A stretch of DNA of 64,000 nt from positions 868,001 to 932,000 of the forward strand of contig NIVC01000106.1 of assembly GCA_002269645.1 (NCBI GenBank). The letters run 5' to 3'. The notes below the pieces were generated by a model that did not search any database, was not told the origin of the DNA, and worked only from the letters and a program-made list of their open reading frames with translations. The translations under genes and the position numbers were made by a program. Of this stretch, positions 7,801 to 57,588 are shown in pieces. Source of the stretch: Macrostomum lignano (lineage: Eukaryota). Within the stretch, counting starts at the first letter, position 1. Each line of letters starts with the position of its first letter.

Positions 7801-10800
7801 ATGGAGTCAACTGAGCTGTACCGGCTAATCTGCGATCCAAGTCGGACGAGCTATGCCAGAGCTCTAACACTGCTGGACAAGCCGTCCGATGCAGACGTAA
7901 CGGAGATCCTACGTCGTTGTAGTCGTCGGCAGAACACCTATTTGCACCTGCTGATGCTGCAGCTTCGTCGACTGTCGAATCGATGCAACGGCGACATCGG
8001 TTTGGCGATCGCCCTCGCCTATCGGTTGGCACTGCGTGGCTGCGACGTCAACGGGCAGAACCTGGCTGGCAACACGGCGCTGCACATGGCCTGCTACCGG
8101 CCTGCTGGGGACCAGCTGGCTCAGCATCTCATCCGGATGGGTGCGCCCGATTTCTGAGAGGCTGTGGCTCATAATTTTGGGGGAAAGTGGTTGAATTGAG
8201 TGACGCTCATACAGGGTGTACAGCAGTTCTGACTCTTAATCGTCACGCGGAGTCTGAGGCGTTACTCGCTGAGATATTACATGTACTCATCTGCACTGAG
8301 AACTCGGGGATCTTTTAGTTGGTCCTTGCAGATGCGAATTTGATGACAAGCCCCATTATCAGTGTCCGCACAAAAACTTTTACAAATTACTTCGTGAAGA
8401 ACAACACGGAAACAATAATTGGCTAACTTCGTTTTCAAACACAAAGGCGCCGATCCTGGCATAAAAAACGAACGAAATTGGCGAGTGTTTCACGACAACC
8501 GGCAGCACAAGGTCTGGCTGATTCGCAGCAGCACTGCCGCAAATTGCTGCAGCATGTGGAGTGCAGGTGCGGATCTTTTGCCTGGTTTATGCTTGGTCAG
8601 CTGGTGCAGAAGGCGCTGCAAATTTTGCTGGTGGCCATGGTTTTCACCACTTTCGGAATTCCGAATTGCACTCGCGGTGCACACACGAGTTTGTTAAGAA
8701 ACAGTTAGAAAAGAATACTGTTGAAGAGAGGCACCGCTTGACAGTACGCTGAATGAGGTCTCATCTTCGACAAATTTGGTCGAGAAAAAAGTGATTGAGA
8801 AGTCAGAAAACATCAAGCAATGAGTTTAAAAACTGCCAAAAATCGGTTTCCAGCAAAATTTGCAACGAATTAAGAGTACATAGCATCCATGGGTTTATGG
8901 ACTATTCTTTCACCTGCCTGTCATTCTACCATACTCGTATAATAAACCTGCTATTTAACAAGTTTGCGACGGAGTATGGCTGGCTGGTGAGTACAATATC
9001 AGGCTTGAATTAAGTTAGAAAGTTTACATGCACCTTTGTAGGTACAGCTAATATTAGAATTCTGTAAGTAGTTTAGCAGTAGGTAGTATCGCAATGTGTA
9101 TCTATTTTTTCTGAGGTTAATTTAACTGAATCACTTTTATTTTATCAATTTTGACGCGTCACAATTTAACCCAGACGTGAAGGCTTTGAAATAGTTTTGT
9201 CACGTCACGGCGAAATCGAAACACAACCCATTGGAATACCAATGTTTAGGTTCAACTTATTTATAAAGTTATTCAAAGTGATCCTTCTCTAGTGCTTTAG
9301 GTTGTGGCCACCCTGATGCAAAGCCTTCGGCGAAATCGTCCAACAACAATTCCAACGCTGACAGGACGGCAATCCTACCAATCCCGCTGATTCCTGAGCA
9401 CACTCAGGCACAGCACTCAAACATTGGCCCTGACTTTCGAATCGTCAGGCATGTACAATCTGTGTCTCTCTGCCTTGGGGGTTGGCCCTAGTGGCTGTGT
9501 ATCCCACGACGACAATTTTCATGCACAAGCACCAAATGAATGTGGCTGTGCAGGGAATCGAACGCCGGGGTCTTGCCCTTAATGGTTAGAGTCAATACTC
9601 AAAGGTTAGGCTCAAAGTAGCTAGTTTACAAACGCTCAACCTTGTACTCAAACTTAGTTGCCAGGGAGGACGCGGCTCTGGTTGCGAAATACCTGAACTC
9701 ATGGATTCGAGTCGACTCTCGTAGACGACGCAAAACTCTGCTGCAGTTGAGCAACGAGACTGGCAATTATGGCATCATCCGGCTGATGGAGAGGCACTCG
9801 AACACTAACGAGCTGGTGTGCAGGGCTCTGTCCTGCGACTGCGACGGAGTTCGCCAACTGCTGGCTCTCAAATCCGGTATGAACCTTTCACAAGTGCTAC
9901 TTACATATAATTCTAATAGCCGTCATTTGACCCTTCTCGTTGTGAAATCGAACCAGCAATCATCCGTGATGCACAATGCACATTGATTGTTGTATAATAG
10001 GGGCTGTTTCGAGTCCTTTAAGCGGCCACATTCATTTGATGCTTTTGCTTTGCTTATCCACGTGGCGCAGAGAGTGTACATGCCTGACGATTAGAAAGTC
10101 AAAAGGCCCCTGTACACCCTGTGCGAGCGTGTGTACGAGTGTGTGCTGTAGTAGCGCTGTAGACTAGTCTTCGCTTTATTCAGCTTTTTTACTCCGCAAA
10201 AATATTGTCCCCAGACAGGCCAAATGTTTCTACGTGCGACAGCTCACAGAAGATCCCAAAGCCACTGCTGGCTGAGATGCGACTGCTCTCCCAGGTGCCA
10301 GGTGCTCAGGAACTCTGCGGACTGCTGCGCTCAGCTGGGGCACCCGATGAGTCACAATATTTTGGTGAGAAGGTTTTAGACTTTAGGTTGTTACCCAGTG
10401 ATGCTCAGTGGTTACCAAGTCATGTCTTGTGGTTACTAAGTGCCTCTAATCATCCGTGCCATGATGTCCAACAGACCAGCTGGAAACAAGTCGACGCTCG
10501 TTTCGCCTGTCCCAATTCTACCAGCTGGTTCAAACTGGCTCCACTGACAGCTTGGCTCAAGCGTGGAGCGAACTTGACGCCAAGCGGGTTGACGTGGATT
10601 GCATTGACGAAGAAACTGGAGATACTTACCTGCACTGTGTGGTGCGAAGGTGGGCTCTTTTTTGTTTTTACCTGGCCCTTAAACCTGTCTCACCAACCAC
10701 CTCACTCCACACCTCCTCACTCCGCACCCCTCACTCCACACCTCCTCACTCCACATCCCTCACTCCACACCTCCACTCCGCGACCCCTCACTCTACACTC

Positions 10801-13800
10801 CCTACTCTACCGCAGGCACGCATCGGCGGACCTCACAGAGCGCAGTCGGCGCAGTTTGGTCCGCCTCATGTACAAACTAGCTCTGGAAGGCGTCGATCTA
10901 CAAGCCAGAAACGTCGCCGGAGACACCGCCTTGCTGACTGCGGCCAACCCGACTTCGGCGATGCCGTCGGCCTCCTCGGCAACTCTTCCACCGGACCGTC
11001 AACTACTGGAACATCTTCTTCGCCTGGGCGTCGACGCGGGACTTCGCGGAGCCGGTGGTCGCGGTCTGGCCTCGTCTAGCTTCGGTCCCGACCTCCGACT
11101 GCAGCGAGGCGGCTGCCCGCGTTTTCGGGTGCCGGGACTGACAGCGGCGGTCCGCGACGCCGACGTCGGTCGAGTGCGTCGCTGGTTGGCGAGCCTTGGC
11201 CGCGTTGAAGCGGTCAGCAACGGCAGGAGCCTCCTTCAACTGGCAAGGGAAGCTGGTGGCGAGGTGGCCCGTCTGGTGGAGGCGGCCAGGCAGACGACGG
11301 AGTTCGCTGCGGCGGTGATGGCCGGAGATTTGGTTGCCATGCGGCGATGGCTGGCGATGGGCGGCGCAAATCGACTTGTCAACGCCTGTTTCCGGTGAGA
11401 GACTTTAATCTCGAGGCAGAGCAGCTAGTCTGCACGAAATTGGACTGGGGCTTGACTTTCAATCTAGCCCATGAGGGCCAAACTCCCTACCTACCTACAA
11501 GAGTTTGTTCATGCCCAACAATGAAAAGCCATGGCAAAGTCGCTGACAGCACAACAGGTCGTTTGGACGGGCATCTAGGGCTGCGATGGTGACTTGCTCA
11601 TTGCTGATTTTGAAGGCGTCGTGCAGCAAGACAGCCTCGAACAACTCCTGGAACAAGGCCGTCCTCTGGCGGCCTTGAACTGAAGAAGGCAACTCAGGCA
11701 AGCCCGCGACGATGCCGCAGATTTTCGTAGACGCTGGACAACAGACCGCCCGGATTGACGAACTGCTGACATCGACAGGCGCACACACTCGATGTTTAGT
11801 AGACGCCGACGCCCTGGACTCGGTCGGCTTGCCCTGTGGCGCTGTTTTCATAAGACCTGACAGCGTTTATTTTGTTTTTTTTGTAGACCCGTGCCTGCGT
11901 TCGAATGTCCGTGTGCGCGTACTCTGGGATCAGCAGAATCGTCTCTCCTGCTTCTTATCGCTAAGTCGGCTTAGGCACTCCTCCTGCAAGCTAGCAAACA
12001 CTCCCAACAACCTTAAAATTATGGGTTTTTATCTAGCTACCACTACCTCATAGCTTACCTACACCATCCCCATCCGCCTCATTCCTGCTCACCCACTCAC
12101 TCGCCTTCAGCTTCCACTTCGTTGGCCTCAGTACAGACGGCCTGACACCTGAGTTCGCCAACCGCCCTTTGCTCGCCGCAGCCGTAGAGTTCGCCCCAGC
12201 CAGCGTTGTCGACTGTCTGCTTCGCTTTGGAGCTCGTCTCGACGTCCAGTGCGAGGAGAGACACCCCTGCGGCCCGGCCGCTTTCTGGGTATTCAACGAC
12301 GCGCCGTTTGGTGCGGCCGTAGGCGGGACGGCCGTCGCCGAAACCGTAGCCGCCTGGGCCGACGCTCGGCATCTCAGAGATGAGCTCGGGCGCACGCTTC
12401 TGCATGCAGCCATCGAGTGGCGCGAACTCAACGATGAGGAAACGTCGTCAACGCCTAACTCAGAAGATTTAGCATCGGGGGCTAAGTCGCTTGCGCCTCC
12501 AGCGACTCTATTACAATCGAAATCGTTTCATTCAATGCTGAACTCAGTTCGGCCTGAGTCTTCGCTTAGACGGTGCCTCAGATCGACGTCATTTTACACA
12601 TCGTCTAAAGTGCAACCGTCCACCGAGTACAAAGTGCAACCGTCCACCGAGTCCAAAGTGCAATCATCCACCGAGTCCAAAGTGCAACCGTCCACCGAGT
12701 CCAAAGTGCAACCGTCCACCGAGTCCAAAGTGCAACCGTCCACCGAGTACAAAGTGCAACCGTCCACCGAGTCCAAAGTGCAACCGTCCACCGAGTACAA
12801 AGTGCAACCGTCCACCGAGTCCAAAGTGCAACCATCCACCGAGTACAAGGTGCAACTGTCCACCGAGTCCAAAGTGTCGCTGTCAGAGGCCAGACATCGA
12901 GTTATTCGCCGTCTGTTAGCACGAGGGGCACCGTTGGCCGCTCGCGACGCGTCAAGTCGAACAGCTCGAGACTTGGCTAGTGCCGTTGGTGACTTGGAAG
13001 TCTGCCGCCTGCTCGACAATCACGTGACCGAGTTGGCCCGTCGAGGCGACCTAGACAGCGTCGAGCAACTGATTCTCGAAGCCTACGACGCAGGTTTCGA
13101 CGGCGCCACGGCGTTAATCGCCGCTCGGCGCCACGATCGCGATCTGCTGCGCTTGCTAGGCGAGGCACCGCGCTACCGGCGCCAAATCGCCGCGCTACAC
13201 GCATCCATAGCCACCGGAGGCGCCGTCGCCGCTGCTGCTTTTGCTCGATTTGCCGGTGAGAAACGGCTGGCGCTCGGCTTGGACCGACGTGGCCGCAACC
13301 TCCTGCACGCCGCCGCGCTGTCCGGCGAGGCCGCACTGGCCGGCTCCGTGGCCGAGCGGCTTCCTGCGCTGGCTGGACAGGGCGACTGTCTGGGTCGGAC
13401 ACCGGCGCACTATGCGGCTTGTCTGGCCGACTCGAAAGCGACGCTGTCAGCAATTTCTCGAGCGATCGGCGGTTTGGACATGTTGATTAAAGATGCCGTG
13501 AGGATTTGCGATTGACTTCTTTAGTAAACTGTCTATATATGCTCTCGACGAGTAGCAAGTGGCGCTATTAGTCAGGTTGAGTGAAAAAACTGATGGCTTT
13601 ATTATGACTCTAATATTCAAATTGGGCGCCTATTTTTTTCAATTGGACACCTATGTATCTCTTATCTGGGCGCCCCAGTGTTTAAGTTCGGCGCCACTGT
13701 GTCTGAATTGGGTATACCAGTGTGTCTGAATTGGGTATACCAGTGTGTCTGAATTGGGTATACCAGTGTGTCTGAATTGGGTACACCAGTGTGTCTGAAT

Positions 13801-16583
13801 TGGGTACACCAGTGTGTCTGAATTGGGTACACCAGTGTGTCTGAATTGGGTATACCAGTGTGTCTGAATTGGGTACACCAGTGTGTCTGAATTGGGTACA
13901 CCAGTGTGTCTGAATTGGGTACACCAGTGTGTCTGAATTGGGTACACCAGTGTGTCTGAATTGGGTACACCAGTGTGTCTGAATTGGGTATACCAGTGTG
14001 TCTGAATTGGGTACACCAGTGTGTCTGAATTGGGTACACCAGTGTGTCTGAATTGGGTACACCAGTGTGTCTGAATTGGGTATACCAGTGTGTCTGAATT
14101 GGGTATACCAGTGTGTCTGAATTGGGTATACCAGTGTGTCTGAATTGGGTATACCAGTGTGTCTGAATTGGGTACACCAGTGTGTCTGAATTGGGTATAC
14201 CAGTGTGTCTGAATTGGGTATACCAGTGTGTCTGAATTGGGTACACCAGTGTGTCTGAATTGGGTATACCAGTGTGTCTGAATTGGGCGCCACCGTGTCT
14301 GAATTGGGTATACCAGTGTGTCTGAATTGGGTACACCAGTGTGTCTGAATTGGGTATACCAGTGTGTCTGAATTGGGTATACCAGTGTGTCTGAATTGGG
14401 TATACCAGTGTGTCTGAATTGGGTATACCAGTGTGTCTGAATTGGGTATACCAGTGTGTCTGAATTGGGTACACCAGTGTGTCTGAATTGGGTATACCAG
14501 TGTGTCTGAATTGGGTATACCAGTGTGTCTGAATTGGGTACACCAGTGTGTCTGAATTGGGTATACCAGTGTGTCTGAATTGGGCGCCACCGTGTCTGAA
14601 TTGGGTACACCAGTGTGTCTGAATTGGGTACACCAGTGTGTCTGAATTGGGTATACCAGTGTGTCTGAATTGGGTATACCAGTGTGTCTGAATTGGGTAT
14701 ACCAGTGTGTCTGAATTGGGTATACCAGTGTGTCTGAATTGGGTATACCAGTGTGTCTGAATTGGGTACACCAGTGTGTCTGAATTGGGTATACCAGTGT
14801 GTCTGAATTGGGTATACCAGTGTGTCTGAATTGGGTACACCAGTGTGTCTGAATTGGGTATACCAGTGTGTCTGAATTGGGTACACCAGTGTGTCTGAAT
14901 TGGGTATACCAGTGTGTCTGAATTGGGTATACCAGTGTGTCTGAATTGGGTACACCAGTGTGTCTGAATTGGGTATACCAGTGTGTCTGAATTGGGCGCC
15001 ACCGTGTCTGAATTGGGTACACCAGTGTGTCTGAATTGGGTACACCAGTGTGTCTGAATTGGGTATACCAGTGTGTCTGAATTGGGTACACCAGTGTGTC
15101 TGAATTGGGTACACCAGTGTGTCTGAATTGGGCGCCACCGTGTCTGAATTGGGTATGCCACTGTGTCTGAATTGGGCGCCACCGTGTCTGAATTGGGCGC
15201 CACTGTGTCTGAATTGGGCGCCACTGTGTCTGAATTGGGCGCCACTGTGTCTGAATTGGGCGCCACTGTGTCTGAATTGGGCACCACTGTGTCTGAATTG
15301 GGTATACCACTGTGTCTGAATTGGGTGCCACTGTGTCTGAATTGGGCGCCACTGTGTCTGAATTGGGTACACCAGTGTGTCTGAATTGGGTATACCAGTG
15401 TGTCTGAATTGGGCGCCACCGTGTCTGAATTGGGTACACCAGTGTGTCTGAATTGGGTACACCAGTGTGTCTGAATTGGGTATACCAGTGTGTCTGAATT
15501 GGGTACACCAGTGTGTCTGAATTGGGTACACCAGTGTGTCTGAATTGGGTATACCAGTGTGTCTGAATTGGGTATACCAGTGTGTCTGAATTGGGTATAC
15601 CAGTGTGTCTGAATTGGGTACACCAGTGTGTCTGAATTGGGTACACCAGTGTGTCTGAATTGGGTACACCAGTGTGTCTGAATTGGGTATACCAGTGTGT
15701 CTGAATTGGGTACACCAGTGTGTCTGAATTGGGTACACCAGTGTGTCTGAATTGGGCGCCACCGTGTCTGAATTGGGTATGCCACTGTGTCTGAATTGGG
15801 CGCCACCGTGTCTGAATTGGGCGCCACTGTGTCTGAATTGGGCGCCACTGTGTCTGAATTGGGCGCCACTGTGTCTGAATTGGGCGCCACTGTGTCTGAA
15901 TTGGGCACCACTGTGTCTGAATTGGGTATACCACTGTGTCTGAATTGGGTGCCACTGTGTCTGAATTGGGCGCCACTGTGTCTGAATTGGGTGCCACTGT
16001 GTCTGAATTGGGCGCCACTGTGTCTGAATTGGGCGCCACTGTGTCTGAATTGGGCGCCACTGTGTCTGAATTGGGCGCCACTGTGTCTGAATTGGGCACC
16101 ACTGTGTCTGAATTGGGTATACCACTTGCACTCTGTCTGAATTGGCGTCGCCCTCGTAGAAATAGGCTGCTTATACTACTTACTGTAAGTAGTAAAAGAG
16201 TTTCTTCCAGAAAAGAAACTGAATGCCAATACAAATTTTGCAGAACAATCTCAGCGTATTTGACTATCTAGAGCAGATGGATCGGCCAACACAAAAAAAA
16301 CTGAAGTCACCAAGCAGAAGAATACTTAATTATCAGGTAAGAGTGACTTCATTACGCTTGTATAAAGCTTTACTTTTCTCTAAACCTAATTATTAGCGTT
16401 TTAAATCTGCCTAAACCTGCTTAGGTTAGAGATCTAATAGACATCGAGCGGAGAGCTACAGTTTCAGTTGGCCCAGTTATCAACGAAATCGCTGCTGCAT
16501 CAACCGAAAACGACTCCGAATCGACTGACAGCCAAAAGGCTGACACAGACTTGCCTATGATTCGCATCGATATCGTCGATTGA
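7801..16583 (+). CDS. Large ankyrin-repeat protein with internal duplication. Exons 7801-8140, 8447-8566, 9301-9448, 9665-9876, 10215-10364, 10475-10649, 10816-11394, [11502-11557, 11731-? uncertain], 12111-13497, 16244-16336, 16425-16583
   Basis: Ankyrin motifs GNTALHMAC, GDTYLH, GDTALL, GRTLLHAA, GRNLLHAA, GRTPAHYA. Splice phases are consistent except across 11395-12110. Confidence 0.8.
12607..12870 (+). repeat. Coding 24-nt VNTR (KVQPSTE[S/Y]) x11
   Basis: Frame-preserving tandem repeat inside an open exon. Confidence 0.85.
13690..16125. repeat. Mixed 23/21-nt minisatellite (CCAGTGTGTCTGAATTGGGTATA / CGCCACTGTGTCTGAATTGGG) in ankyrin-gene intron 13498-16243
   Basis: Over 100 copies. A 624-bp block duplication is visible (15119 vs 15743). 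Confidence 0.95.
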
Positions 16584-19697: not shown

Positions 19698-20519
19698 GGT
19701 AACTGGTTGGTTTTTGGATATCTAAAATTGGAATTCGTCAGCATGGAGCAGCAAAGTCGGAGGGTGGTCGGTTCGGTTGGTCACCCTAATTTGGGGTTTC
19801 TCAAGATACATTCCGGGTCAAGAAACGCACAATGCGTTACACACTAAGCTGACAAATATCAGGCTGCAAGCACAACCGTTGTGTGCGTCCCTGCACAGGA
19901 ATAGGGTAAACAAGATTAACAAGGTTAACAAGATTTTAACTTACCTTACTGATGAAAATTTAAGGACCTTGGGGCTTAAGAAGTGTTTAAAGTTAACAGT
20001 TTTTTGTCGCATGGAATTTTATCTATTCGGTTTCGAATTTCCAGGGCACGATGAAGAATATTATTTGATGCGCATCTACCCAAGTTATAGTTTTATTTAT
20101 ACTGTCGGCTAGGACGAGTGGTACCACCCCCTGCCGTGCGCGAGCTACTACTAGAGACTACACGCTCAGCACAAGCACAATAAGCTAACTGATTCTGCGC
20201 TGACAGACGCAGATTCAAGAGAATTTCCCAAGCAAACAATGCCGCGAGATGAGAGTCCACTGACCACGCGCTGAACAATAGGCCGTGAGTGAAATTTACT
20301 GACCCTGGCGAAGTTGCTTGCTAGAAAGACGAGGGCTTTGCTTTTTTTGGAAAACTCTGTTTTGCCAGGCATTTCGCTCAGGGCGTAAATGACACATTGC
20401 AGGTTGTTTACAAGAATCTGGACTACAAACTGCTCCTAAAATAACTCTGCAAATTATTTACAACCAAAGTGCCGCTCGAAAATGCAGGCTTAATCAGTGA
20501 GTTCATTACAGTGAGGCCT

Positions 20520-21768
20520 CTCCATTTCTCACCTGTGATGTGTCTCCATTTCTTAGCTGTGATGTGTCTCCATTTCTGACCTGTGATGTGTCTCCATTTC
20601 TGACCTGTGATGTGTCTCCATTTCTGACCTGTGGTGTGTCTCAATTTCTGACCTGTGATGTGTCTCCATTTCTGACCTGTGATGTGTCTCAATTTCTGAC
20701 CTGTGATGTGTCTCCATTTCTGACCTGTGATGTGTCTCAATTTCTGACCTGTGATGTGTCTCAATTTCTGACCTGTGATATGTCTCCATTTCTGACCTGT
20801 GATGTGTCTCAATTTCTGACCTGTGATGTGTCTCAATTTCTGACCTGTGATGTGTCTCCATTTCTGACCTGTGATGTGTCTCAATTTCTGACCTGTGATG
20901 TGTCTCAATTTCTGACCTGTGATGTGTCTCAATTTCTGACCTGTGATGTGTCTCAATTTCTGACCTCTGATGTGCCTCCATTTCTGACCTGTGATGTGTC
21001 TCAATTTCTGACCTGTGATGTGTCTCAATTTCTGACCTGTGATGTGTCTCAATTTCTGACCTGTGATGTGTCTCCATTTCTGACCTGTGATGTGTCTCAA
21101 TTTCTGACCTGTGATGTGCCTCCATTTCTGACCTGTGATGTGTCTCAATTTCTGACCTGTGATGTGCCTCCATTTCTGACCTGTGATGTGTCTCAATTTC
21201 TGACCTGTGATGTGCCTCCATTTCTGACCTGTGATGTGTCTCAATTTCTGACCTGTGATGTGTCTCAATTTCTGACCTGTGATGTGTCTCCATTTCTGAC
21301 CTGTGATGTGTCTCAATTTCTGACCTGTGATGTGTCTCAATTTCTGACCTGTGATGTGTCTCAATTTCTGACCTGTGATGTGTCTCAATTTCTGACCTCT
21401 GATGTGCCTCCATTTCTGACCTGTGATGTGTCTCCATTTCTGACCTGTGATGTGTCTCAATTTCTGACCTGTGATGTGTCTCAATTTCTGACCTGTGATG
21501 TGTCTCAATTTCTGACCTGTGATGTGTCTCCATTTCTGACCTGTGATGTGTCTCAATTTCTGACCTGTGATGTGCCTCCATTTCTGACCTGTGATGTGTC
21601 TCAATTTCTGACCTGTGATGTGTCTCAATTTCTGACCTGTGATGTGCCTCCATTTCTCACCTGTGATGTGCCTCCATTTCTGACCTGTGATGTGTCTCCA
21701 TTTCTGACCTCTGATGTGCCTCCATTTCTGACCTGTGATGTGTCTCAATTTCTGACCTGTGATGTGTT
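20520..21768. repeat. 24-nt minisatellite (TCTGACCTGTGATGTGTCTC[A/C]ATT)
   Basis: About 52 copies. Confidence 0.95.
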
Positions 21769-22597
21769 TTAATTGATTGGTAGCAATTCCAAGAAAACCC
21801 ATCAAGACACCAAATATTGGCGCCCCCTAGGGTTGCGGCCCTCACCAGTTAAAAACTATTGCGTACACAACTACATCTATCCTTAAAAATTGTGATGCAT
21901 GTCGTCTGTCCCTCCGAATATTGATTCTCGATTTCTACATTATACCGTATACAGAAACATACCGGTTATAACCTGGGTCATTTTTTAAACTACTATAAAC
22001 AGTGCGAAAGTTAAAAAGTATGCCAAAAGTCAAGTGTACACGTACTTTATTTACTATAGCTGTTTACACCTGACTGGAGTTTGAACGAGCAAATTACAAT
22101 TCGCGGGAGTGCTGCGGCACACTGGTGCAACGCTTTAGGCCACTTGTGTACATTGTGCTGCTCGGGTGTACATGTACAGCGGCAATAACAATTCCTCGGC
22201 CCATTGTTTTCGTACGTGCACAAGCCTCAAATGAATGTGGCCGCGCAATATTGCATTTGCCGCTGAGATATGCGCTTAAGCTACTTTTAGTAGAGCGAAA
22301 AAGTTCAATTATTTATCCTATTATTTATGCTACCCGCAAATTAAGTGAAATTTTGAACAAATGCAAATTTGCATCATTGAGAGAGCAGCAATTTAAATGA
22401 CACATAGTGAGCAAGTTTTAAATCAATAGAGTTCAATGCAGTTGAAGCACAGTTGAAGAATATTTGACAAATACTAAAGTGCTACTAGTACACCAAATAC
22501 TACTTAATTATAATCACAAATGATCTGGATAGCTCAGTAGGCACATGGATTTATTTTTGTGTAAGAAAAAAGACTTGGTGTACAGGGATGCGAAACG

Positions 22598-23130: not shown

Positions 23131-24514
23131 TCAACTATCAGACGATCTCCAAGCCACTCGTCGAAAACCGGCGCAGCATCCGGCTGAAGCAGCCTCATCT
23201 TCGTCTACCTGCTGCTGCTGAGCACTGATGGAGCGGGTCAGCTGCACAGTGTTAGCCGGCCTCACGGGTGTCCGTCCCGATCGGCCATCAACCAGGAGCC
23301 GATGGCTGTAGGTCTTGTAGATGGCACGAATCAGCTGATTGAAAGCGGCTTCAACATGGGTGGTGTCCAGTGCGCTGGTCTCCAAGTAGGACAGGCCATT
23401 GTCGCTAGCAAAATTTGTTGCTTCAGTTGTTGTCACCTGGCGAGCGAATTCCTGGTCGACCTTGTTGCCAACCAGAATCACTATGGACTCTTCGCTGCTG
23501 TTTTGGCGAAGTTCGTCGAGCCAGTAGTTCAGGCTGTCAAAGGAGGCCCGGCTGGAGATTGAGAACACCAGGAGGGCACCCAGGCTGTCGCGGTAGAATG
23601 CCTTCGTCACCGCCCGGAACCGATCTTGGCCTGGGGGGGGGGGCGAGGTTAATTTCTGATCTTCTGATCTTTTGTGATTGACCTACGGATTGTTTGGTGG
23701 CTGTGGCGGATTCAGGATTTTTAAATTGGGGGGACGGATTGGCCCAAAATAAGCCCAAAACAAAAAAACTCCCCTCTTATATGCAAGTCCAGCCCCGGCA
23801 AAAAAAAGAGGGGGGCGGCTGCCTCCTCCCCTGGATCTGCCACTGTTTGGTGGGAAGGATGGGAGAAGGGAGAGAGAGAAGGGGAGAGGGGGGAGGGAGA
23901 GAGAAGGGAAGAGAGGGAAGGGAGAGAGGGAAGGGAGAGAAGGAAGGGAGAGAGGGAAGAGAGAGGGAAGGGAAAGAGAGAAAAGGGAGAGAGAGGAAAG
24001 GGAGAGGAAAGGGAGAGAGGGAAGGGAGAGAGAGGAAAGGGAGAGGGAAGGGAGAGAGGGAAGGGAGAGAGAGGAAAGGGAGAGGGAAGGGAGAGAGGGA
24101 AGGGAGAGAGAGGAAAGGGAGAGGGAAGGGAGAGAGGGAAGGGAGAAAGAGGAAAGGGAGAGGGAAGGGAGAGACGGAAGGGAGAAGAGGAAGGAAAGGA
24201 AGAAAGTGCGATATAGGAGCAGAGGGCTTTAGGTTAGCCAGAAATGACTGTCAATACGTAAAAAAAACAATTCGAATTCAAAAAGGCGCTTCACAAAGAC
24301 AGGAAAAGTACAGTGCAGACTCACCTGCAGTGTCCCAGATCTGACAGCGCACAGTGCGGCCATCCACAGACACAATCTTATTCGAGAACTCGACTCCTAT
24401 AGTAGTCTGGCTTTCTATTCGGAATTCATTCTTAGTAAACCTGCTGATTAGATTCGTTTTACCTACGCCACTGCTGCCGATTACAATAATCTTAAATAGG
24501 CAATCGTATTCCAT
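23131..24514 (-). CDS. RAB11-like: Divergent Rab11-family GTPase (exons 24514-24325, 23630-23131; 229 aa)
   Basis: [52 protein letters not shown]. Phase-1 GT-AG intron. Confidence 0.92.
23701..23845. mobile_element. hAT-type MITE
   Basis: Imperfect TIRs CTGTGGCGGATTCAG / CTGGATCTGCCACTG and perfect 8-bp TSD TTTGGTGG (23693-23700, 23846-23853). Confidence 0.85.
23860..24210. repeat. Polypurine (GA-rich) low-complexity tract in Rab intron
   Basis: Almost exclusively G/A over about 350 nt. Confidence 0.9.
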
Positions 24515-31030: not shown

Positions 31031-34000
31031 TCACAGCTTCGACCTTGACAGCCAGTCGAATTCCTGAAATTGATGGACAGAATTTAGTTAGGGCATGCAT
31101 GAGGTGCCAAGCAGTCGCTCCTGGCCAAGCGGACGAACACGTACGAAAGCACTGCCGCTCACGCAGGGTGTTACAGCGGCCATGGCCTTCTCATAGCATG
31201 ACAAGCTACATTGAGTACTTAGCTGCTCAGCTGCAGGAATTGTGAGACAAAACTGCAAAATGACTCAACATTCAGCAGATTGTTTGCGACACAAGTTAAG
31301 CAGAGCTGGCCGTGGTTAGTACAAAGGCGGCCATAGCAGTTTCTCACAATCCAACTGTCAGGAGGGGGCAGTTGACCCCCATCTAACTGCTAGGAGAAGG
31401 GCAGTTTCCCCCATCTAACTGCCAGGAGAAGGGCAGTTTCCCCCATCTAACTGCCAGGAGAAGGGCAGTTTCCCCCATCTAACTGCCAAGAGGGGGGCAT
31501 TTGCCCCCATCTAACCGTCAGGGGGGCAGTTTCCCCCATCCAGCTGTCAGGAGGGGGCAGTTGACCCTCATCTAACAGCCAGGAGGGGGCAGTTTCCCCC
31601 CATCTATCTACCAGGAGGGGGGGGCAGTTGCCCCCATCTATCTACCCGGAGGGGGGCAATTGCCCCCATTTATCTGCCAGGACCCCATCCAACTGTCGGG
31701 GGGGGGCAGTTGTCCCCATCCAACTGTCTTGGGGCAGTTGTCCCCATCCAACTGTCGGGGGCAGTTGTCCCCATCCAACTGTCGGGGGCAGTTGTCCCCA
31801 TCCAACTGTCGGGGGCAGTTGTCCCCATCCACCTGTCGGGGGCAGTTGTCCCCATCCAACTGTCGGGGGCAGTTGTCCCCATCCAACTGTCTTGGGGCAG
31901 TTGTCCCCATCCAACTGTCTTGGGGCAGTTGTCCCCATCCAACTGTCGGGGGCAGTTGTCCCCATCCAACTGTCGGGGGCAGTTGTCCCCATCCAACTGT
32001 CGGGGGCAGTTGTCCCCATCCACCTGTCGGGGGCAGTTGTCCCCATCCACCTGTCGGGGGCAGTTGTCCCCATCCAACTGTCGGGGGCAGTTGTCCCCAT
32101 CCACCTGTCGGGGGCAGTTGTCCCCATCCAACTGTCGGGGGCAGTTGTCCCTGCTATGCGGTGCCATCACCTGCTGCTTGCGCTCCGCCCCAGTATCGAT
32201 GATGGCGTTGATGAGGCAGGGCCGGTCGCGAACCCCGGCGAACTCCGCAAACGCCTGGCGTAGTTCGCCAACGCTGCGCACCAATCGGCCGTAGCCGCCC
32301 AACGCTTCGGCGGCCAAATCGTAGCGACACTCCGAGGTTAGCGACGTCGCCGGCAGGCGAAGGGCAGCCGACGCCGACGAAGCACCGGATGAAGGCGCGG
32401 CGCCGTCCTGCTGGAGCAGCTGGCGAAGGACATCAGCCGGCACGCCGGAATAAATTCCCGAATTGTTGATGACAACAAGCAGCACGGGCATGCGATAGCG
32501 GGCCAGGGTTTCCAGCTCTGCTAGGGAGAACCCGACAGCTGAGTCGCCTTCCAGGCATAAAACTCGACGATGACCAACTCGAGAGTCGCCGATGCACAGG
32601 TCGGCGGCGGCGGCGAAGCCGAGACCGACGCCCATCGTACCGAAGGTGCCGGCGTCCTTGAATAGCGAGGAATGGAGTTTTGACCAAGATAAGGATTTTT
32701 GGGTGCCAGAGTTCAAATGTGGATTTTTTGGTGCTAAAGTTAAAATGGGGATTTTTTGGTGCTAGAGTTCTCGGGTGTGCTAGATTCCAAATGGGGATTT
32801 TCAGGAGTGCTAGATCTCAGGGTGGATTTTCGGATGTGCTAGATCTCAGATGGGGATTTTTTTGTGTGCTAGATTCCAGATGGGGATTATCGGGTTTGCT
32901 AGCTTCCAAATGGGGATTTTCAGGAGTGCTAGATCTCAGGGGGGATTTTCAGGAGTGCTAGATCTCAGGGGGGATTTTCGGGTGTGCTAGATCTCAGATG
33001 GGGATTTTTGTGTGTGCTAGATTCCAGATGGGGATTTTCGGGTATGCTAGATTTCAGATGGGGATTTTTGGGTGTGCTAGATCTCAGATGGGGATTTTCG
33101 GGTGTGCTAGATTCCAAATGGTGATTTTCGGGTGTTCTAGATTTCAGATGGGGATTTTTGGGTGTGCTAGATCTCAGATGGGGATTTTTGGGTGTGCTAG
33201 ATTACAAATGGTGATTTTCAGGAGTGCTAGATCTCAGGGGGGATTTTCGGGTGTGCTAGATCTCAGATGGGGATTTTTGTGTGTGCTAGATTCCAGATGG
33301 GGATTTTCGGGTATGCTAGATTTCAGATGGGGATTTTTGGGTGTGCTAGATCTCAGATGGGGATTTTCGGGTGTGCTAGATTCCAAATGGTGATTTTCGG
33401 GTGTTCTAGATTTCAGATGGGGATTTTTGGGTGTGCTAGATCTCAGATGGGGATTTTTGGGTGTGCTAGATCTCAGATGGGGATTTTCGGGTGTGCTAGA
33501 TCTCAGATGGGGATTTTCGGGTGTGCTAGATCTCAGATGGGGATTTTCGGGTGTGCTAGATTCCAAATGAGGATTTTTGTGTGTGCTAGATTCCAGATGG
33601 TGATTTTCGGGTGTGCTAGATCTCAGATGGGGATTTTCGGGTGTGCTAGATCTCAGATGGGGATTTTCGGGTGTGCTAGATCTCAGATGGGGATTTTCGG
33701 GTGTGCTAAATTCCAAATGAGGATTTTTGTGTGTGCTAGATTTCAGATGGGGATTTTCAGGTGTGCTAGATTTCAGATGGGGATTTTCAGGTGTGCTAGA
33801 TCTCAAAGGGGGATTTGTTGGTGTGCTAGATCTCAAAGGGGAGATTTTCGAGTGTGCTAGATCTCAAATGGGGATTTTTTGGGATGCTAGATTTCAAATG
33901 GCGATTTTCGGGGCGCTGGTACCAAACATGGATTTAGGGTATTTAAACAGAGTTGAGCTTTAAATTTAGAAATATCGATAGATGACGAGAGTCGAAGCTC

Positions 34001-37000
34001 TTCTGATGAAAGGAAGAATGTAATCTAAGGATTGGCGAAGACAATAACTTCACATAAATTAAAACAAATAAATCGCCGATATGTATCGATAAAACAGTTT
34101 GCGGATCTACCAAAATCAATTAATAACAAAAGATATACGCAAATAACTTACCAGGCGCCTACGCGCCAAGCGATTAGGCAGCATGGCCCGCCCAATGTCC
34201 ATGCTGTTGGCGCCCTCGCTAACAATCAGCCAGTCGTCGCCGCTATTGTCAACAAATTTTGCTAATTCGTTCAGCGCCGAATAATACGTCATGGGCACGG
34301 TTTGGCCCTCGACAATCAGAGCGTCGACCCGGGCTCGATTCGCGGCCGAAGCGGCGTTGAGTTCGCGCCACCAATCGCTGCTAGAAGAGAATTCGAAGCC
34401 GTGCAGCTCGGATGACAACTGGAAGATCAGATAAGTTTATTGTATTATGCAATAATTAACGCTATCTATATTTTTGCCACAGTTTTGAATGAAAAACTGT
34501 AAAAAAGTAAGATTACCTGCTCAACAACAGCTGCCACACTGCCGCACAGGGCGACTTCGCAGGTGACATTGGTGTGAAACTCTTCAGGATGGATGTCCAC
34601 CTATTAGGAGAGATAAAAAAACGTTCCTGACTTTGGAAAAAAAATCTTTTTTCCTAAATCCAAGGTAATTTATGAGCATTTAATTTACAAGGAATAGATT
34701 AATCCAACAAGTAGAATAGAAGAAAACGTACTGCTGAGTACGATCAAACCGGACCAATAAAAACCAAGCGTTAGAAATTGTCTTTCTTAGTACTCATTCG
34801 CAATGCAAATGCGTGCGTACAAAAATTATCAGCCTTCTTACACCCCTGAAAGTAAGTAAGTACATTGATTTAGTTTGGAATGGGGGGGTTGGGGGCGGGT
34901 TCTTTATCGTCGGAGAGAGAAGAGAAACGAAGGGTTAGGGTTGATAAGGCGACGAGGCTAGAGGCAGCAGCCAGACAGGACTATCGACCAAGTGGGGAGG
35001 CGGGTGGGGGGTGGGTCTGATGGGTAGGAAATCTAGGGGTCTGTGAACGTACACTCCAACCCCCCCCCCCCTCAAACACTACGCCTTTTTCTCGCCCCAC
35101 TCATCCACTCACCACCCAAAACCAACCTACAGTACTGACTCCGCAAGCTCCCACAAAACACACAAAGTAAAGGCAAAACTGGGCAAGATACAAAATCCAG
35201 TTTGGACAAGAAGCAGTTTAACTTAGAAATATTAGTTCCGCTATATTACTAATACGCAGTAATGGTGAAATGCGCTGTACTAGGCTGCGGCCTGATGGGC
35301 TGCAAGATTGCTGGCGAGCTAGCCCGTCAAGGCCATCGAGTCAAGATGACGGACAGCAATGCAGAGGTATTAAATAGCGCTTATCAGCGTATGGAAGAGG
35401 ACAAACAGGAGCTGCTTCGAGAAGGCCTACTGATGCAAGGCGCCTTTCCAGGCCAGGTGCTTTGCCTGTCCCGCCTAGAAGAGACCGTCTCGGATGCCGA
35501 ATTCATATTCGAAGCTGTGCACGATAATTTGGATACGAAATCGGACCTATTAGAAAAGGTTAGTCACGTGTGCCAGCCGGAGGCAGTGATCAGCACCAAC
35601 ACTTTGCATCTGGATGTTAACGAAGTGTTTGCCAGGTGCGCCAAGAGGGAGAGATGTCTTGGCCTGCGATTCTTATTTCCTGTCTACTATATCCCGGAGG
35701 TGAGTCGGTTCGGACATGCTCATAATATAATATAGGTCATGCTGACAGTGTGATGGTGTCAGATGGGTCATGCTGACAGCAGGTGACAGATGGGTCATGC
35801 TGACAGCAGGTGACAGATGGGTCATGCTGACTGCAGGTGACAGATGGGTCATGCTGACAGGTGTCAGATGGTTCATGCTGACAGGTGTCAGATGGTTCAT
35901 GCTGATAGGTGTCAGATGGGTCATGCTAACAGGTGTCAGATGGGTCATGTTGACAGGTGTTAGATGGGTCATGCTGACAGGATGTTTCAGATGGGTCATG
36001 CTGACAGGATGTTTCAAATGGGTCATGCTGACAGGATGTTTCAGATGGGTCATGCTGACAGGATGTTTCAGATGGGTCATGCTGACAGCATGTTTCAGAT
36101 GGGTCATGCTGACAGGTGTCAGATGGGTCATGCTGACACCAGGTGTCAGATGATTCATGCTAACAGGTGTCAGATGGGTCATGTTGACAGGTGTCAGATG
36201 GGTCATGGTGACAGATGTCAGATGGGTCATGCTGACAGATGTCAGATGGGTCATGCTAACAGGTGTCAGATGGGTCATGTTGACAGGTGTCAGATGGGTC
36301 ATGTTGACAGGTGTTAGATAGGTCATGCTGACAGGATGTTTTAGATGGGTCATGCTGACATGTGTCAGATGGGTCATGCTGACAGGTGTGAGATGGTTCA
36401 GGCTGAGTCAGGTGTCAAAGCTACATGAAAAATGTAAGCTACCACAAAACAACTTCAACAACAGGTTGAGATTAATCCAAGCCGAGACACCTCCTCAAGC
36501 ACTACGGAAAGAGTTCGTCGCCTCCTAGAAGACATGGGCAAGACTTTGTTCTTTCGCAGCGGCGGCAATCCGCTGATTCTAACCGAGGAGCAACGCGAAG
36601 AGAGACGCAGAGTGGTGCTGGAGCAGCTGCACAGGAGCTCGGGCTTCGGCAGGGCTGAACAGGCCAACAGTGTACCAGCTCTTGGCTGGGGCGGCGGCGG
36701 TGGAGGCGGCGGCTACCATCACAGTCAACAGCTGCACCAGGTGCACCAGGTGCAGCAACAACAACTGCAACAGTTGCTTCAACAGCAGCAGTCTGAGTGC
36801 GCCATCTGCTTGGATCGGGCCAGAGACTGCCTGCTGTCGCCGTGTCACCACCTGGCACTGTGCTGCACCTGTGCTCAGCTGCTGCACTCGAGACGCGACT
36901 TTTGCCCGGTGTGCCGTCAGCCAATTCAAGACGTTATCAAGGTTTATCACACCTGACTGAAGCTGGGGTGCGCTAAAGTCTAGTCTTGTAGTTAAAATTC

Positions 37001-40000
37001 TGTCTCACTGTACATGTAGTAGACTGTGAAGAAGAATGGTTAAGGACAGGGGTTCGCCGGTCAATTTTAAAGTTTCGTCCATTATTTTTCTTTCTATTAC
37101 GAGTCTTGTAGAACTCGAATAGTACGATCATCATTCGGTAAGCAAAGTTCGTTCTTTCCATACCGAAAAACAGAGACAGCATGATCTTCTTTCCATGTGC
37201 GTCCCTTTGAGCTTTTACCGGAGGATTGGTCCTTCCTGCTTCGAACTGCTCAACCCAGTTGTAGACGGTCATCCTGCTCACCGCATTAGCTCCATGAATG
37301 TTGCATAAATCCGCATAAATCTCTGATCGCTTTTTTCCGAGTTTCCAGAGGGTAAAAATTGCAGCGCGCTGTCCTTCCCTTGAGTTCAGTTCCATAAGTA
37401 CTTATCGTAATTCAAATTGCCGCGATATCTGCGATACTACTACACTTAAACTATAGTTTGTATAGAAGACAGCACTAATATTTTGCTGCGATCTAAAACT
37501 GTTATGTTTTTGTTGACCCAACCATAAACATTTTTCTAATGATATTTTTTATGTACACGTATGATAACCCTCTCATTTCTCACATGCAGAGCTGGTGGTC
37601 AGTAGCACCTGTACACAGACAGGGTTAAATATTTTATTCACTGCGATCGATTTTTATCTTCGAAATCTATATACACACACAGGACCCGCGAAATTTGAAT
37701 CGGACTATGTTCGTTATTTTTTATTATTAATCAGCTTTTAACCAGTTTCCTGCCTCCAATGCTAATTCTCTAAACTCTTTTATATCCTACAGAAAGACAT
37801 AAAACAGACAGTGCATTAGCTAGACTACTCTTGGGCTCTTAGTGGAGGCCCCTGTCTCTTGGGTGGGCGCCCCTGTCTCTTGGGTGGGCACCCCTGTCTC
37901 TTGGGTGGGCGCCCCTGTCTCTTGGTGGGCGCCCCTGTCTCTTGGGTGGGCGCCCCTGTCTCTTGGTGGGCGCCCCTGTCTCTTGGGTGGGCGCCCCTGT
38001 CTCTTGGGTGGGCGCCCCTGTCTCTTGGGTGGGCGCCCCTGTCTCTTGGGTGGGCGCCCCTGTCTCTGGGTGGGCGCCCCTGTCTCTTGGTGGGCGCCCC
38101 TGTCTCTTGGTGGGCGCCCCTGTCTCTTGGGTGGGCGCCCCTGTCTCTTGGGTGGGCGCTCCTGTCTCTTGCTGGGCGTCTCTGTTTCTTGGTGAGCCTT
38201 CCTACTTCTATTACTATGTCGGTGGATGCCACGTTCAAAGAGCTGCCGTCATTAATATAGCCTTAGTTTTTACCTGAATAAATTTGACATCCGGGGTCCA
38301 GCGAGGCGGCCGGCCAAAGTGCAGGATCCAGTTGAGCCTGGCGCCCAGCAGCACTACCACATCGGCTTGCTTCAGCGCCCTAGTCCGAGCGGCCGACACG
38401 CAGCCTGGATGATCGTCCGCGGCAACGCCCTTGCCCATGGGGGTCGGCAGGAAGGGCAGCCTGGTTGATTGGATAAGCTGGCGAACTGCCAGCTCCGCTC
38501 TGCCCTGTGCGGCGCCCTTGCCAATCACCACGAGGGGCCGACGGGCGGAGCGAAGCAGCCGGGCGGCGGCTGACACAGACTGGGGATCCGCCAGGGTGAC
38601 CGGCGGCTGCGGCAGCGGCGGAGGGAAGCTGTGGAGGGGATAGGATACCCATGAAAACGGTACCTAGGTCAAAAAGCGTCCAAGAGTCCTTGCAGGTAAA
38701 ATAGGAAATAACTGACCCTAGACGGCTCAAAAAACGAGATTTCACGTTACAAGTCGCCTAGAAGTCAATTTAAGGTGTTTTATCATCTACGACTCTGAAA
38801 CGACTCCGGAGCCGTAGAGTCGTATCTGAGGCGTCCTAGAGTCGCTGTAGAATCACTGAGTTGCATCTAAAGCGCATCTGCGTCAATTTATATATAATAA
38901 CTTTATTAAGTTAGCGCAAACAACAACGACTATTGAAAAACTTTGTTGCGACTGTTACGATTCTACAACTCGCGTGATGCGATCTTGACTCAAAATCGCC
39001 TCTCGGTGGTTGCATTACAGTCGTTTGAGTTGGCAAAGAGTCGCTAGAGTCATTAGTAAGTTGTTTGCAAAGATTCTTTAGCGATTATGGTCACGGTAAC
39101 GTTTTCAACAGGAAGGTGTTGTGTCGTGTCGAGACTGCTCAAGAGCAATCATTTTACTAGGACAGTATTGAAAACAATTTCTTTACTTTTCAACTACCAG
39201 TAGAGTAGCAAATAAAAGTTTCCTAAAATTAATTTTATACACGCAATATTCTACTGTTTTTACTGCAAGTAAAGTATTAAGGAAATATTTGATGTTAGAT
39301 GTTTTTCTAGCCCGATTTGTCTATGGCCAAACCTCATTCAGCGATATGTAAAATGCGCTATGCGCTTTGCGATATGCACAAATGTATATGTTTAGCATTA
39401 TCGTTTTTAATTAATTTTTGCAAATTTGTTATTTAGTAGAATCTCACTGGATCTCCTCAGAATCAACTGACGACGTAACAAAATCGCCAGGTAGGTCCAG
39501 GTACACAGCACCAGGCCGCCCGTAGGTGGCCTGTTTCACTGCCTGATAGAAAAAGAACATCAAAACTGCAATAAGATTTCACTATGAACGATTTAAACAC
39601 AAAATCAAACGTAACAAGATCTAATGCGAGAGTCAACCTTGTGCACAAAATGCGGAATTCTGGCAATTGACGGTAGGCGGGCGCTGAACTTGCAGAACTT
39701 GGCCGCAGCCTCTGCCTGCGGGAACTCCTGGAATGCCTCGCTGCCATCCAGGTGCGAGTCGCTGGCGCCGCCGATCACCAGCACTGGCCTGAGGGGGTTG
39801 TGGGCGATTCGCTTAAACCAACGAGTAGGACTTGGGATGTTGCGATGGCTGGCTTGTGTTGCCTCGCTGTTGGCCCAGCAACTCGGGATCTGAGAGGCTG
39901 GCCCAGCAACTGAGGATCTGGGAGGCTGGCCCAGCAACTCGGGATCTGAGAGGCTGGCCCAGCAACTGGGGATCTGGGAGGCTGGCCCAGCAACTGGGGA

Positions 40001-40876
40001 TCTGAGAGGCTGGCCCAGCAACTGGGGATCTGGGAGGCTGGCCCAGCAACTGACACTCTGGGAGGCTGGCCCATGCAGCCACTGGGGATTTGGGAGGCCG
40101 GCTCAGCAGCAACTGAGGATCTGAGAGGCTGGCCCAGCAAATAAAGATCTGGGAGGCTGGCCCAGCAACTGACACTCTGGGAGGCTGGCCCAGCAACTGA
40201 CACTCTGGGAGGCTGGCCCAGCAACTGAGGATCTGGGAGGCTGGCCCAGCAACTGACACTCTGAGAGACTGGCCTAGCAACTTAGGATTTGAGAAGTTGT
40301 TCCAGCAACTGAGGAACTGGGAGTAGCAAGCAAAGGCACAATGCTCACCAGCAGTTTTCATTTGCATTGGACAGTCCGGCCAGTGCATGCACAACTCCAG
40401 GACCGGAAACAACCAGACAGACTCCTGGCCTAGAAAATGTTAAAATTTTGTTGGGATTTCAGCGACTGCAAAAGTTAGTCTACAGTTAAATCTTCACGAT
40501 TAGATTTTCGATACATGTATAATTTATTACTTACTTCCCAGTAAGATAGCCAATTGCTGATGCAGCATAGGATGCCTGAAAAGTCACAATATTACTGCAC
40601 AATATTTTCACACAGTAACAAATGATTCACTTGAGTTAAAATAATGGAAACCTACAGACTGTTCATTGCGCATTGCAACAAACTTGATACCGGCAGATTG
40701 AAAGGCAACAGCAACCTCTACCACAGGAATTCCAACTATGCCAAAAGCATATTCAATGCCCTGGAAAGTCAAACAAGGAGTGCAAGATGTATATTTATGC
40801 AGCCCAATAAACTGCTGCTGCACAAATTACCAACCTGTGAGCGAAGGGCTTGAGCCAGCACTGTTGCTCCATCCAT
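31031..40876 (-). CDS. HACL1: 2-hydroxyacyl-CoA lyase 1 (TPP-dependent, peroxisomal). Exons 40876-40835, 40760-40656, 40575-40535, 40429-40349, 39788-39638, 39542-39448, 38628-38274, 34600-34517, 34418-34152, 32656-32171, 31063-31031
   Basis: Exons sum to 1740 nt = 579 aa. Motifs [55 protein letters not shown] motif GDSA...NN. C-terminal SKL. Confidence 0.96.
31355..32152. repeat. 27-nt self-complementary minisatellite (GGGGGCAGTTGTCCCCATCCAACTGTC) in the last HACL1 intron
   Basis: About 29 copies, ending about 20 nt from the donor at 32170. Confidence 0.92.
32718..33910. repeat. 30-nt minisatellite (GATGGGGATTTTCGGGTGTGCTAGATCTCA) in HACL1 intron
   Basis: About 39 copies. Confidence 0.95.
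35262..36956 (+). CDS. 3-hydroxyacyl-CoA dehydrogenase NAD-binding domain + C3HC4 RING fusion, 309 aa (exons 35262-35699, 36465-36956), nested in HACL1 intron
   Basis: GCGLMG Rossmann motif, FIFEAV..NL..K, STNT, GLRFLFP; phase-0 intron gag|gtgagt...cag|gtt; RING CAIC-x10-PCHH-x3-CCTC-x10-CPVC. Confidence 0.9.
35735..36410. repeat. 24/27-nt minisatellite (GACAGGTGTCAGATGGGTCATGCT) filling the nested gene's intron
   Basis: About 27 copies. Confidence 0.93.
37100..37395 (-). mobile_element. Internally deleted mariner/Tc1 transposase remnant
   Basis: Mos1-like N-terminal HTH ([30 protein letters not shown]) fused directly to PPVK...KKIMLSLFF. No TIRs recognised. Confidence 0.75.
37846..38192. 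repeat. 21/20-nt minisatellite (GGGTGGGCGCCCCTGTCTCTT)
   Basis: About 16 copies in HACL1 intron. Confidence 0.92.
39862..40320. repeat. 28-nt minisatellite (GAGGCTGGCCCAGCAACTGAGGATCTGG), copy A
   Basis: About 16 copies in HACL1 intron 39789-40348. Confidence 0.92.

Positions 40877-46821: not shown

Positions 46822-57588
<10,767 letters not shown>

Follow-up and report, generated by a model that had tools for sequence, protein, structure and literature searches.

We describe a two-exon gene in a 64,000-nucleotide (nt) stretch of the genome of the flatworm Macrostomum lignano (assembly GCA_002269645.1, contig NIVC01000106.1, positions 868,001 to 932,000; the whole stretch is called the window below). 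The gene encodes a 309-amino-acid (aa) protein in which the NAD-binding domain of 3-hydroxyacyl-CoA dehydrogenases (3HCDH_N) is followed by a C-terminal RING finger. To judge by its residues, the N-terminal Rossmann module is a catalytically dead 3HCDH descendant (a pseudoenzyme) that is conserved under selection. The whole is best explained as a dead NAD-binding module tethered to a dimeric RING-type ubiquitin ligase (E3) as its recognition or regulatory part, an explanation that we regard as evenly balanced between right and wrong. The fusion of an NAD-binding pseudo-dehydrogenase with a RING appears to be undescribed; each of the halves is of a known kind. A literature search, which excluded supplements and subscription journals, found no published account of the 3HCDH-RING family.

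The Pfam scan placed 3HCDH_N (PF02737) on residues 4-173 (E 5.5e-36, profile positions 2-173 of 180) and zf-C3HC4_3 on residues 255-303 (E 1.3e-12). No match to the 3HCDH C-domain (PF00725) was found in the protein even at E<=1. A preliminary description made from the DNA alone had predicted this domain composition, including a Gly/Gln linker, a terminal C3HC4 RING, the absence of the C-terminal dimerisation domain and a departure from the 3HCDH family right after LLEDMGK. All of this was borne out: the 3HCDH_N match ends just past LLEDMGK, and the protein ends in VIKVYHT. In profile-profile alignments with 18 canonical enzymes (hhalign) the homology ends at residue 176. The best NCBIfam score of the protein is 90 bits, against cut-offs of 347-429, and NCBIfam scores are flat across many models; profile scores against the PDB lean slightly to HADH and Hbd as the parent of the Rossmann module.

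To map the residues, we aligned the protein pairwise and by profile with clostridial Hbd (4KUH) and human HADH (1F0Y, in which chain and mature numbering are the same); the positions of the residues are listed in Table 1. The dinucleotide-binding residues are intact. The catalytic residues are not: Leu115 stands at the site of the catalytic Ser (HADH Ser137, Hbd Ser117), Arg136 at the site of the catalytic His (HADH His158, Hbd His138), and Phe139 at the Asn of the FFNP motif (HADH Asn161). Of the His-Glu dyad (HxFxPxxxMxLxE) only the Glu is retained, in an IPEVE motif that resembles the IPLVEV subgroup. Thr186 takes the place of a further Asn (HADH Asn208, Hbd Asn186) by spacing only, homology being undetectable there. 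The motif readings of the preliminary description, i.e., an intact GCGLMG, TNTL in place of SNTS, GLRFLFP in place of GLHFFNP and the partner Glu at +12, were all confirmed.

Table 1. Positions of the parts of the 3HCDH-RING gene in the window
Feature	Position	Strand	Details
Exon 1	35262-35699	+	438 nt, residues 1-146; ATG at 35262; donor GAG/GTGAGT
Single intron	35700-36464	+	765 nt; GT...AG signals
Exon 2	36465-36956	+	492 nt including TGA; residues 147-309; acceptor ...AACAG/GTT
GCGLMG dinucleotide motif	35283-35300	+	residues 8-13 (G8, G10, G13)
Asp31, end of strand 2	35352-35354	+	equivalent to NAD ribose-binding Asp45 (human HADH), Asp31 (Hbd)
Glu84, Asp88, Lys93	35511-35540	+	equivalent to the Hbd NAD ribose contacts Glu90, Lys95
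TNTL	35595-35606	+	residues 112-115; NAD contact Asn113 retained
GLRFLFP	35661-35681	+	residues 134-140; Arg136 codon CGA at 35667-35669
Glu148 in PEVE	36468-36470	+	+12 from Arg136; dyad Glu (HADH Glu170, Hbd Glu150) retained
Segment replacing the C-domain	36546-36671	+	residues 174-215; family-specific, not alignable to canonical enzymes
Linker	36672-36788	+	residues 216-254; Gly-rich, then Gln-rich; GGC and CAG/CAA runs
C-terminal C3HC4 RING	36789-36953	+	Pfam residues 255-303, then tail VIKVYHT

In the Hbd of F. prausnitzii the NAD is hydrogen-bonded by the side chains of Asp31, Glu90, Lys95, Asn115 and Ser117, and the acetoacetyl group is contacted by Ser117, His136 and Asn186; a helix of the N-domain and a “clamp base” of the C-domain, which also forms the dimer, hold the CoA between them (PMC11476959). 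The 309-aa protein retains Asp31, Asp88, Lys93 and Asn113, while all three acyl contacts are replaced and both the clamp base and the dimerisation domain are gone. With these residues we are confident that the protein is not a 3-hydroxyacyl-CoA dehydrogenase, and it rather probably still binds NAD(H). Binding of acyl-CoA in the canonical mode appears unlikely because the Ser, His and Asn contacts are replaced and the clamp base is absent. Of the earlier suggestion of a pseudoenzyme that binds NAD(H) or acyl-CoA, the pseudoenzyme holds and NAD(H) is plausible, its contacts being conserved, but acyl-CoA is disfavoured.

The same architecture is widespread. The first search returned 94 proteins, mostly of about 290 aa, with 40-57% identity to the M. 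lignano protein. The family was then widened by a profile search and an exhaustive hidden Markov model search. Its members come from molluscs (bivalves, gastropods, cephalopods and a chiton), annelids, a brachiopod, nemerteans, monogonont, bdelloid and seisonid rotifers, and a priapulid. Among arthropods they were found in ticks, mites, a horseshoe crab, a sea spider and myriapods, and among other animals in hemichordates, echinoderms, scyphozoan jellyfish and the sponge Sycon. Outside animals there are members in Acanthamoeba castellanii and Emiliania huxleyi. Conservation of the architecture and of the Arg was expected across invertebrates; both are indeed conserved, but that scope was too narrow, as the amoeba and the haptophyte share them. 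No vertebrate, insect or nematode member was among the matches named, which is an absence from names and not a proof of loss.

The substitutions go together with the RING. In the 94 first matches, position 136 is Arg, position 115 is Leu, Met or Ile, and Glu148, Glu84 and Lys93 are present, each in 94 of 94. The associations were counted in those 270 of the collected proteins that reach 100 residues or more beyond the site. In 210 of them a RING goes with a hydrophobic residue at the Ser site and Arg at the His site; 42 have Ser and His and lack a RING; 12 have the hydrophobic residue and Arg without a RING (mostly truncated models); and the remaining 6 show other combinations. Ser and His together with a RING were found in none of the 270. 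All ten distant members tested with Pfam have 3HCDH_N and a C-terminal zf-C3HC4_3, and none has the C-domain, so that homologues retaining His and a C-domain, which would have spoken against the preliminary description, did not turn up. In the RING-bearing homologues the His site is occupied by Arg in all but two, which have Gln or Trp. The replacements seen throughout the family are Ser to Leu, Met or Ile; His to Arg; Asn to Ser or Thr; and the Asn of FFNP to Phe, Tyr or His.

To describe conservation over the greatest distances we used a broad set of 57 RING-bearing representatives clustered at 50% identity. At least 80% conserved in this set are G8, G10, G13, G24, V27, D31, E84, K93 and N113; G134, R136, F137, L138, P140, V141, V147 and E148; and the eight Zn ligands, Pro294 and Arg297. 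In particular, Arg136 is present in 57 of 57, Glu84 and Lys93 in 100% and Glu148 in 91%; position 88 is Glu or Asp in 57 of 57 and position 260 is Ile or Val in 53 of 57. The glycines of GCGLMG are conserved at 85-89% here and are invariant in an alignment of 54 sequences, in which the mean column identity across phyla is 57%. The residues that contact NAD are 84-100% conserved in the broad set, from animals to protists. Thus the dinucleotide site, the Arg-Glu motif and the RING are what is kept from amoeba to flatworm. Glu146, Arg177 and Gly179 are not conserved in the broad set: Glu146 and Arg177, like one further stretch of the sequence, are specific to the animal orthologue group, and Arg177 and Gly179 are invariant within it.

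A few members depart from the common plan. One of 669 aa (P0149, from outside the window) has the entire 3HCDH_N-RING unit twice in tandem, by duplication, a millipede protein (P0079) has gained an N-terminal PX domain, and a protein of Dimorphilus (P0147) is further diverged, the Ser site being occupied by His and the Arg site by Gln.

The RING finger has all eight Zn ligands (C258, C261, C273, H275, C279, C282, C293 and C296) in cross-brace spacing and the residues of E2 contact and linchpin (I260, P294 and R297). The nearest solved RINGs are those of MGRN1, MDM2/MDM4, BIRC7, cIAP1/2, XIAP and MUL1, and CPVCRQPIQ is identical between the protein and MDM2. Work on MDM2, IAPs and RNF4 established that the Arg after the last RING Cys is a “linchpin” that locks the E2~ubiquitin conjugate and that an aromatic residue at -3 of the tail contacts ubiquitin across the RING dimer. 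Arg297 is conserved in 92-100% of sequences. Tyr307, at -3 from the C-terminus, aligns with MDM2 residue 489, the terminal Tyr of that RING, and Tyr or Phe is found there in 86 of the 89 first-search matches that cover the position. By these features the RING is of the MDM2/IAP type and looks catalytically competent, and the protein is likely to be an active E3.

The AlphaFold2 model of the 309-aa protein, built with the 54-sequence alignment, has a mean per-residue confidence score (pLDDT) of 89.3, with 97-98 over residues 1-170, about 92-93 over residues 171-200 and lower values beyond. It shows a Rossmann domain up to residue 176, a strand at 173-176, helices at 187-204 and 207-215, a disordered Gly/Gln stretch at 216-232 (pLDDT <50), a Gln-rich helix at 233-254 and a confident RING. 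The top Foldseek matches in the PDB are Hbd, CRYL1, HADH and the dehydrogenase domains of multifunctional enzymes, with alignments of about 180-200 columns at about 2 A (E 1e-17 to 1e-14). A C-domain remnant was considered and rejected, as hhalign stops at residue 176 and Foldseek alignments of more than 200 columns have a root-mean-square deviation of at least 10 A. The compact orthologue of Saccoglossus is modelled on the same plan with a disordered linker of 28 residues (predicted TM-score, pTM, 0.70). In both monomer models (pTM 0.67-0.70) a disordered stretch of about 17-28 residues leads to the RING, which is thus tethered and not docked in them; the idea that the RING sits in a fixed position on the pocket was rejected.

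The low complexity of the M. lignano linker is a lineage-specific expansion; the linkers of orthologues are shorter and acidic. In animal orthologues the disordered linker holds a conserved motif, [IV]PxLxHxGN followed by PPQDD. Its M. lignano version is VPALGWGGG (36672-36700, residues 216-225), in which Pro217 and Leu219 are more than 90% conserved. The motif may be a docking or autoinhibitory element.

Both halves can be compared with known systems. The protein shares with the HADH family (HADH 1F0Y, Hbd 4KUE/6AA8, CRYL1 3F3S) the N-terminal Rossmann domain with GxGxxG, the Asp of strand 2, the Glu and Lys ribose contacts, the Asn of SNT and the dyad Glu. It differs from that family in the catalytic Ser (now Leu), His (now Arg) and Asn (now Thr or Ser), and in the loss of the dimerisation and CoA-clamp domain, the place of which is taken by a conserved helix, a flexible linker and the added RING. 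With the RINGs of MDM2, IAPs (BIRC2, BIRC3, BIRC7, XIAP), MGRN1 and MUL1 it shares the zf-C3HC4_3 spacing, an Ile or Val behind the first two Cys, the linchpin Arg at the end of CPxCR and, at -3 of a short C-terminal tail, an aromatic residue; however, the recognition modules of those ligases are BIR, p53-binding or transmembrane domains and not a pseudo-dehydrogenase.

Rossmann proteins derived from enzymes that read NAD(P)(H) instead of turning over a metabolite include CtBP, NmrA and HSCARG/NMRAL1. They belong to other subfamilies of the fold (D-2-hydroxyacid dehydrogenases and short-chain dehydrogenases/reductases), and none of them is known to be covalently fused to a RING. A domain with an adenine-nucleotide ligand stands beside a RING in RNF146 (WWE, iso-ADP-ribose) and in Deltex ligases (DTC, ADP-ribose/NAD), in folds unrelated to the Rossmann module. 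In RNF146 the ligand bridges WWE and RING, unlike the flexibly linked RING in our monomer models.

In the explanation that we prefer, the protein would be a cytosolic RING-type ubiquitin ligase with the dead 3HCDH NAD-binding domain as its N-terminal module. The cytosolic location is suggested because the protein starts directly at strand 1 (MVK...) without a presequence and ends in -YHT without an SKL-type (PTS1-like) tail. The RING would homodimerise via the C-terminal tail, substituting for the dimerisation lost with the C-domain, and, by means of its linchpin Arg297 and the aromatic Tyr307 of the tail, would activate E2~ubiquitin. The Rossmann module would still bind NAD(H) or a closely related adenine dinucleotide and would act as the recognition or regulatory part of the ligase. 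Occupancy of the pocket, which is lined by the Arg136-Glu148 pair and would be opened by the loss of the C-domain, would set the choice of substrate or the activity of the ligase. That the ligand state controls ubiquitination is a tentative proposal, which we think has somewhat more against it than for it. Metabolite sensing is plausible; the coupling of lipid or redox state to ubiquitination, put forward in the preliminary description, we only infer.

Several points weigh against this explanation. Its functional steps rest on sequence and predicted structure. The conservation of the NAD pocket could be structural and not functional, and five bivalve members carry Ser at the Asp31 site. The AlphaFold monomers, with the RING on its disordered linker, show no communication between pocket and RING, and the dimerisation of the RING is suggested by the similarity of its tail alone. 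The association counts are non-independent, most likely reflecting a single ancient change that has been maintained since. The joining of the two exons in M. lignano is deduced from homology, splice signals and the NCBI model.

An unlikely alternative is a ligand-free scaffold, in which the Rossmann module is a protein-interaction or substrate-recruiting domain and the “NAD” residues are kept for the stability of the fold. The flexible tether would then be that of ordinary ligases built of a substrate-binding domain plus a RING, and the animal orthologues are indeed strongly conserved outside the pocket, e.g., in the PxLxHxGN motif of the linker. What this alternative leaves unexplained is that Asp31, Glu/Asp88, Lys93 and Asn113 are conserved at 84-100% from animals to the haptophyte and the amoeba, when the only known role of these side chains is hydrogen bonding of the NAD riboses; the animal-specific Glu146 and Arg177 are not conserved over the same range.

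It seems improbable that the module is still an enzyme, that is, an altered oxidoreductase, bifunctional with the RING, in which Arg136 polarises the carbonyl or carboxylate of a new small substrate. The intact NAD site and the invariant Arg-Glu pair would fit, and relatives of the fold among the matches, CRYL1 (L-gulonate 3-dehydrogenase) and FHMPC dehydrogenase, use hydroxy acids that are not CoA esters. Yet the replacements affect Ser, His and Asn jointly, half of the active site is missing with the C-domain that builds it, the NCBIfam score is far below every cut-off, and Arg is a poor proton shuttle by established enzymology.

We give an equally low probability to a reader of nucleotide-tagged (ADP-ribosylated or CoA-modified) proteins that directs ubiquitination in the manner of RNF146 and Deltex ligases. 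The loss of the C-domain exposes the place where nicotinamide and substrate would lie, animals have two basic residues there (the invariant Arg136 and Arg177), and the conserved residues are those that contact ADP-ribose; on the other hand, the idea is purely inferential and Arg177 is not conserved outside animals.

The gene model itself is well founded. The spliced 309-aa open reading frame (ORF) of the preliminary description was reproduced in phase 0, and its product is 100% identical to the NCBI entry [quoted passage not shown] on scaffold NIVC01000106.1. The 35699/36465 junction is supported by that model, by the GT-AG signals and by homology: the 3HCDH_N match is continuous over it and orthologues read ...IPEVEI... 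there without a gap. On its own, the ORF of exon 2 encodes residues 147-309, which comprise the final strand-helix-strand unit of the Rossmann module as well as linker and RING. Therefore the fusion does not depend on the splice and is no artefact of splicing or gene merging. The N-terminus fits those of orthologues, MVK[IV]AV[LI]GCG. The genomic gene of the Capitella orthologue has about seven small introns, none of them at the PE/VE site, so that intron positions say nothing about the junction. A 1188-nt Logan contig of another species contains an uninterrupted coding sequence for a 293-aa orthologue, which speaks for expression outside M. lignano. When a transcript record for the exact M. 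lignano protein was sought, the sole contig on record was the genome scaffold.

We are practically certain that the 3HCDH-RING fusion is a real gene; that it is an artefact of annotation, be it a chimeric gene model or a pseudogene in decay, as a deviating second M. lignano model might suggest, has a negligible probability given the Rossmann end and RING in one ORF of exon 2, a complete coding sequence whose start and stop agree with those of orthologues, the occurrence of the same architecture in more than 200 proteins, the 57% mean column identity across phyla and the intron-free contig with the fused coding sequence. The second model (P0002, 221 aa) skips an in-frame 264-nt GT...AG segment within exon 2 (36615-36878, + strand) and thereby loses the linker along with six of the RING's eight ligands. 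Either the gene prediction is at fault here, or this is an “exitron” isoform without a functional RING.

Some features around the coding sequence may be mentioned. A pyrimidine-rich stretch at 35240-35261 (+ strand), which ends in ...TACTAATACGCAG 2 nt ahead of the ATG, resembles a 3' splice acceptor, possibly for trans-splicing; a stop codon in frame lies a short way upstream. In the intron, positions 35755-36417 are occupied by 26.3 copies of a 24-nt tandem repeat (GGTGTCAGATGGGTCATGCTGACA) with 88% matches; each unit contains a 6-bp inverted repeat TGTCAG...CTGACA, and the array yields spurious ORFs of 117-234 aa on both strands. Starting 17 nt past the stop codon, an ORF at 36973-37395 (- strand) matches the HTH_48 domain of Mos1/mariner transposase (E 2.8e-09); it is a transposon remnant in or beside the 3' untranslated region.

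The 3HCDH-RING gene lies antisense within an intron of a gene of a thiamine pyrophosphate (TPP) enzyme, the exons of which include 31670-32716 and 38235-38576 (- strand). The 575-aa product of this host gene has TPP_enzyme_N, M and C domains and looks like a 2-hydroxyacyl-CoA lyase or an acetolactate-synthase-like protein. Conserved synteny was rejected as a clue to function, as the neighbours of the Capitella orthologue are FMO-like and RLL genes and none is shared with M. lignano. The nesting is probably incidental because of this difference in neighbours.

Elsewhere in the window there are exons of a MARK/Par-1-type kinase (Pkinase, UBA, KA1) at 46822-47310, 50609-51196, 52656-53018 and 57031-57534, all on the - strand. 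Other genes lie at 1448-2314 (-), 7801-13515 (+), 23131-23610 (-) and 60847-61490 (-); the kinds seen are an MFS/sugar-transporter-like exon, ankyrin-repeat exons, a Ras/Rab-family GTPase exon and, called by eye, ORFs resembling ribosomal protein L13a. Further short-period tandem arrays occupy 13651-16234, 20423-21805, 31628-32300, 32998-33860, 37825-38277, 39605-40412, 50056-50569, 51233-52566, 53149-55578 and 56349-56930. The long repetitive ORFs that they produce in several frames reach 850 aa; these arrays are probably satellite-like repeats of introns or intergenic DNA, not genes.

The family is already present in public databases, where its members are either called hypothetical proteins or carry the wrong names of enzymes: “3-hydroxybutyryl-CoA dehydrogenase-like”, “L-carnitine dehydrogenase”, “lambda-crystallin homolog” and “peroxisomal bifunctional enzyme-like”. 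Hundreds of entries so named are almost certainly not those enzymes. Such labels could make metabolic reconstructions of molluscs, ticks, echinoderms and others miscount genes of beta-oxidation.

More broadly, the family may be an ancient class of RING ligases across eukaryotes, from sponges to echinoderms and in Amoebozoa and haptophytes, in which the active site of a dehydrogenase became a receptor for NAD(H) or for ADP-ribose- or CoA-type tags that gates or targets ubiquitination; we consider this extension rather doubtful. If it is true, the class would have gone unnoticed because no named member was found in vertebrates, insects or nematodes and because its members are labelled as ordinary dehydrogenases. 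If binding of NAD(H) does alter the output or targeting of the ligase, it would link redox or nucleotide state directly to ubiquitination, by way of a fold that is not known in such a role. M. lignano is experimentally tractable, and therefore the function can be tested. The breadth and strictness of its conservation make the 3HCDH-RING family a worthwhile target.

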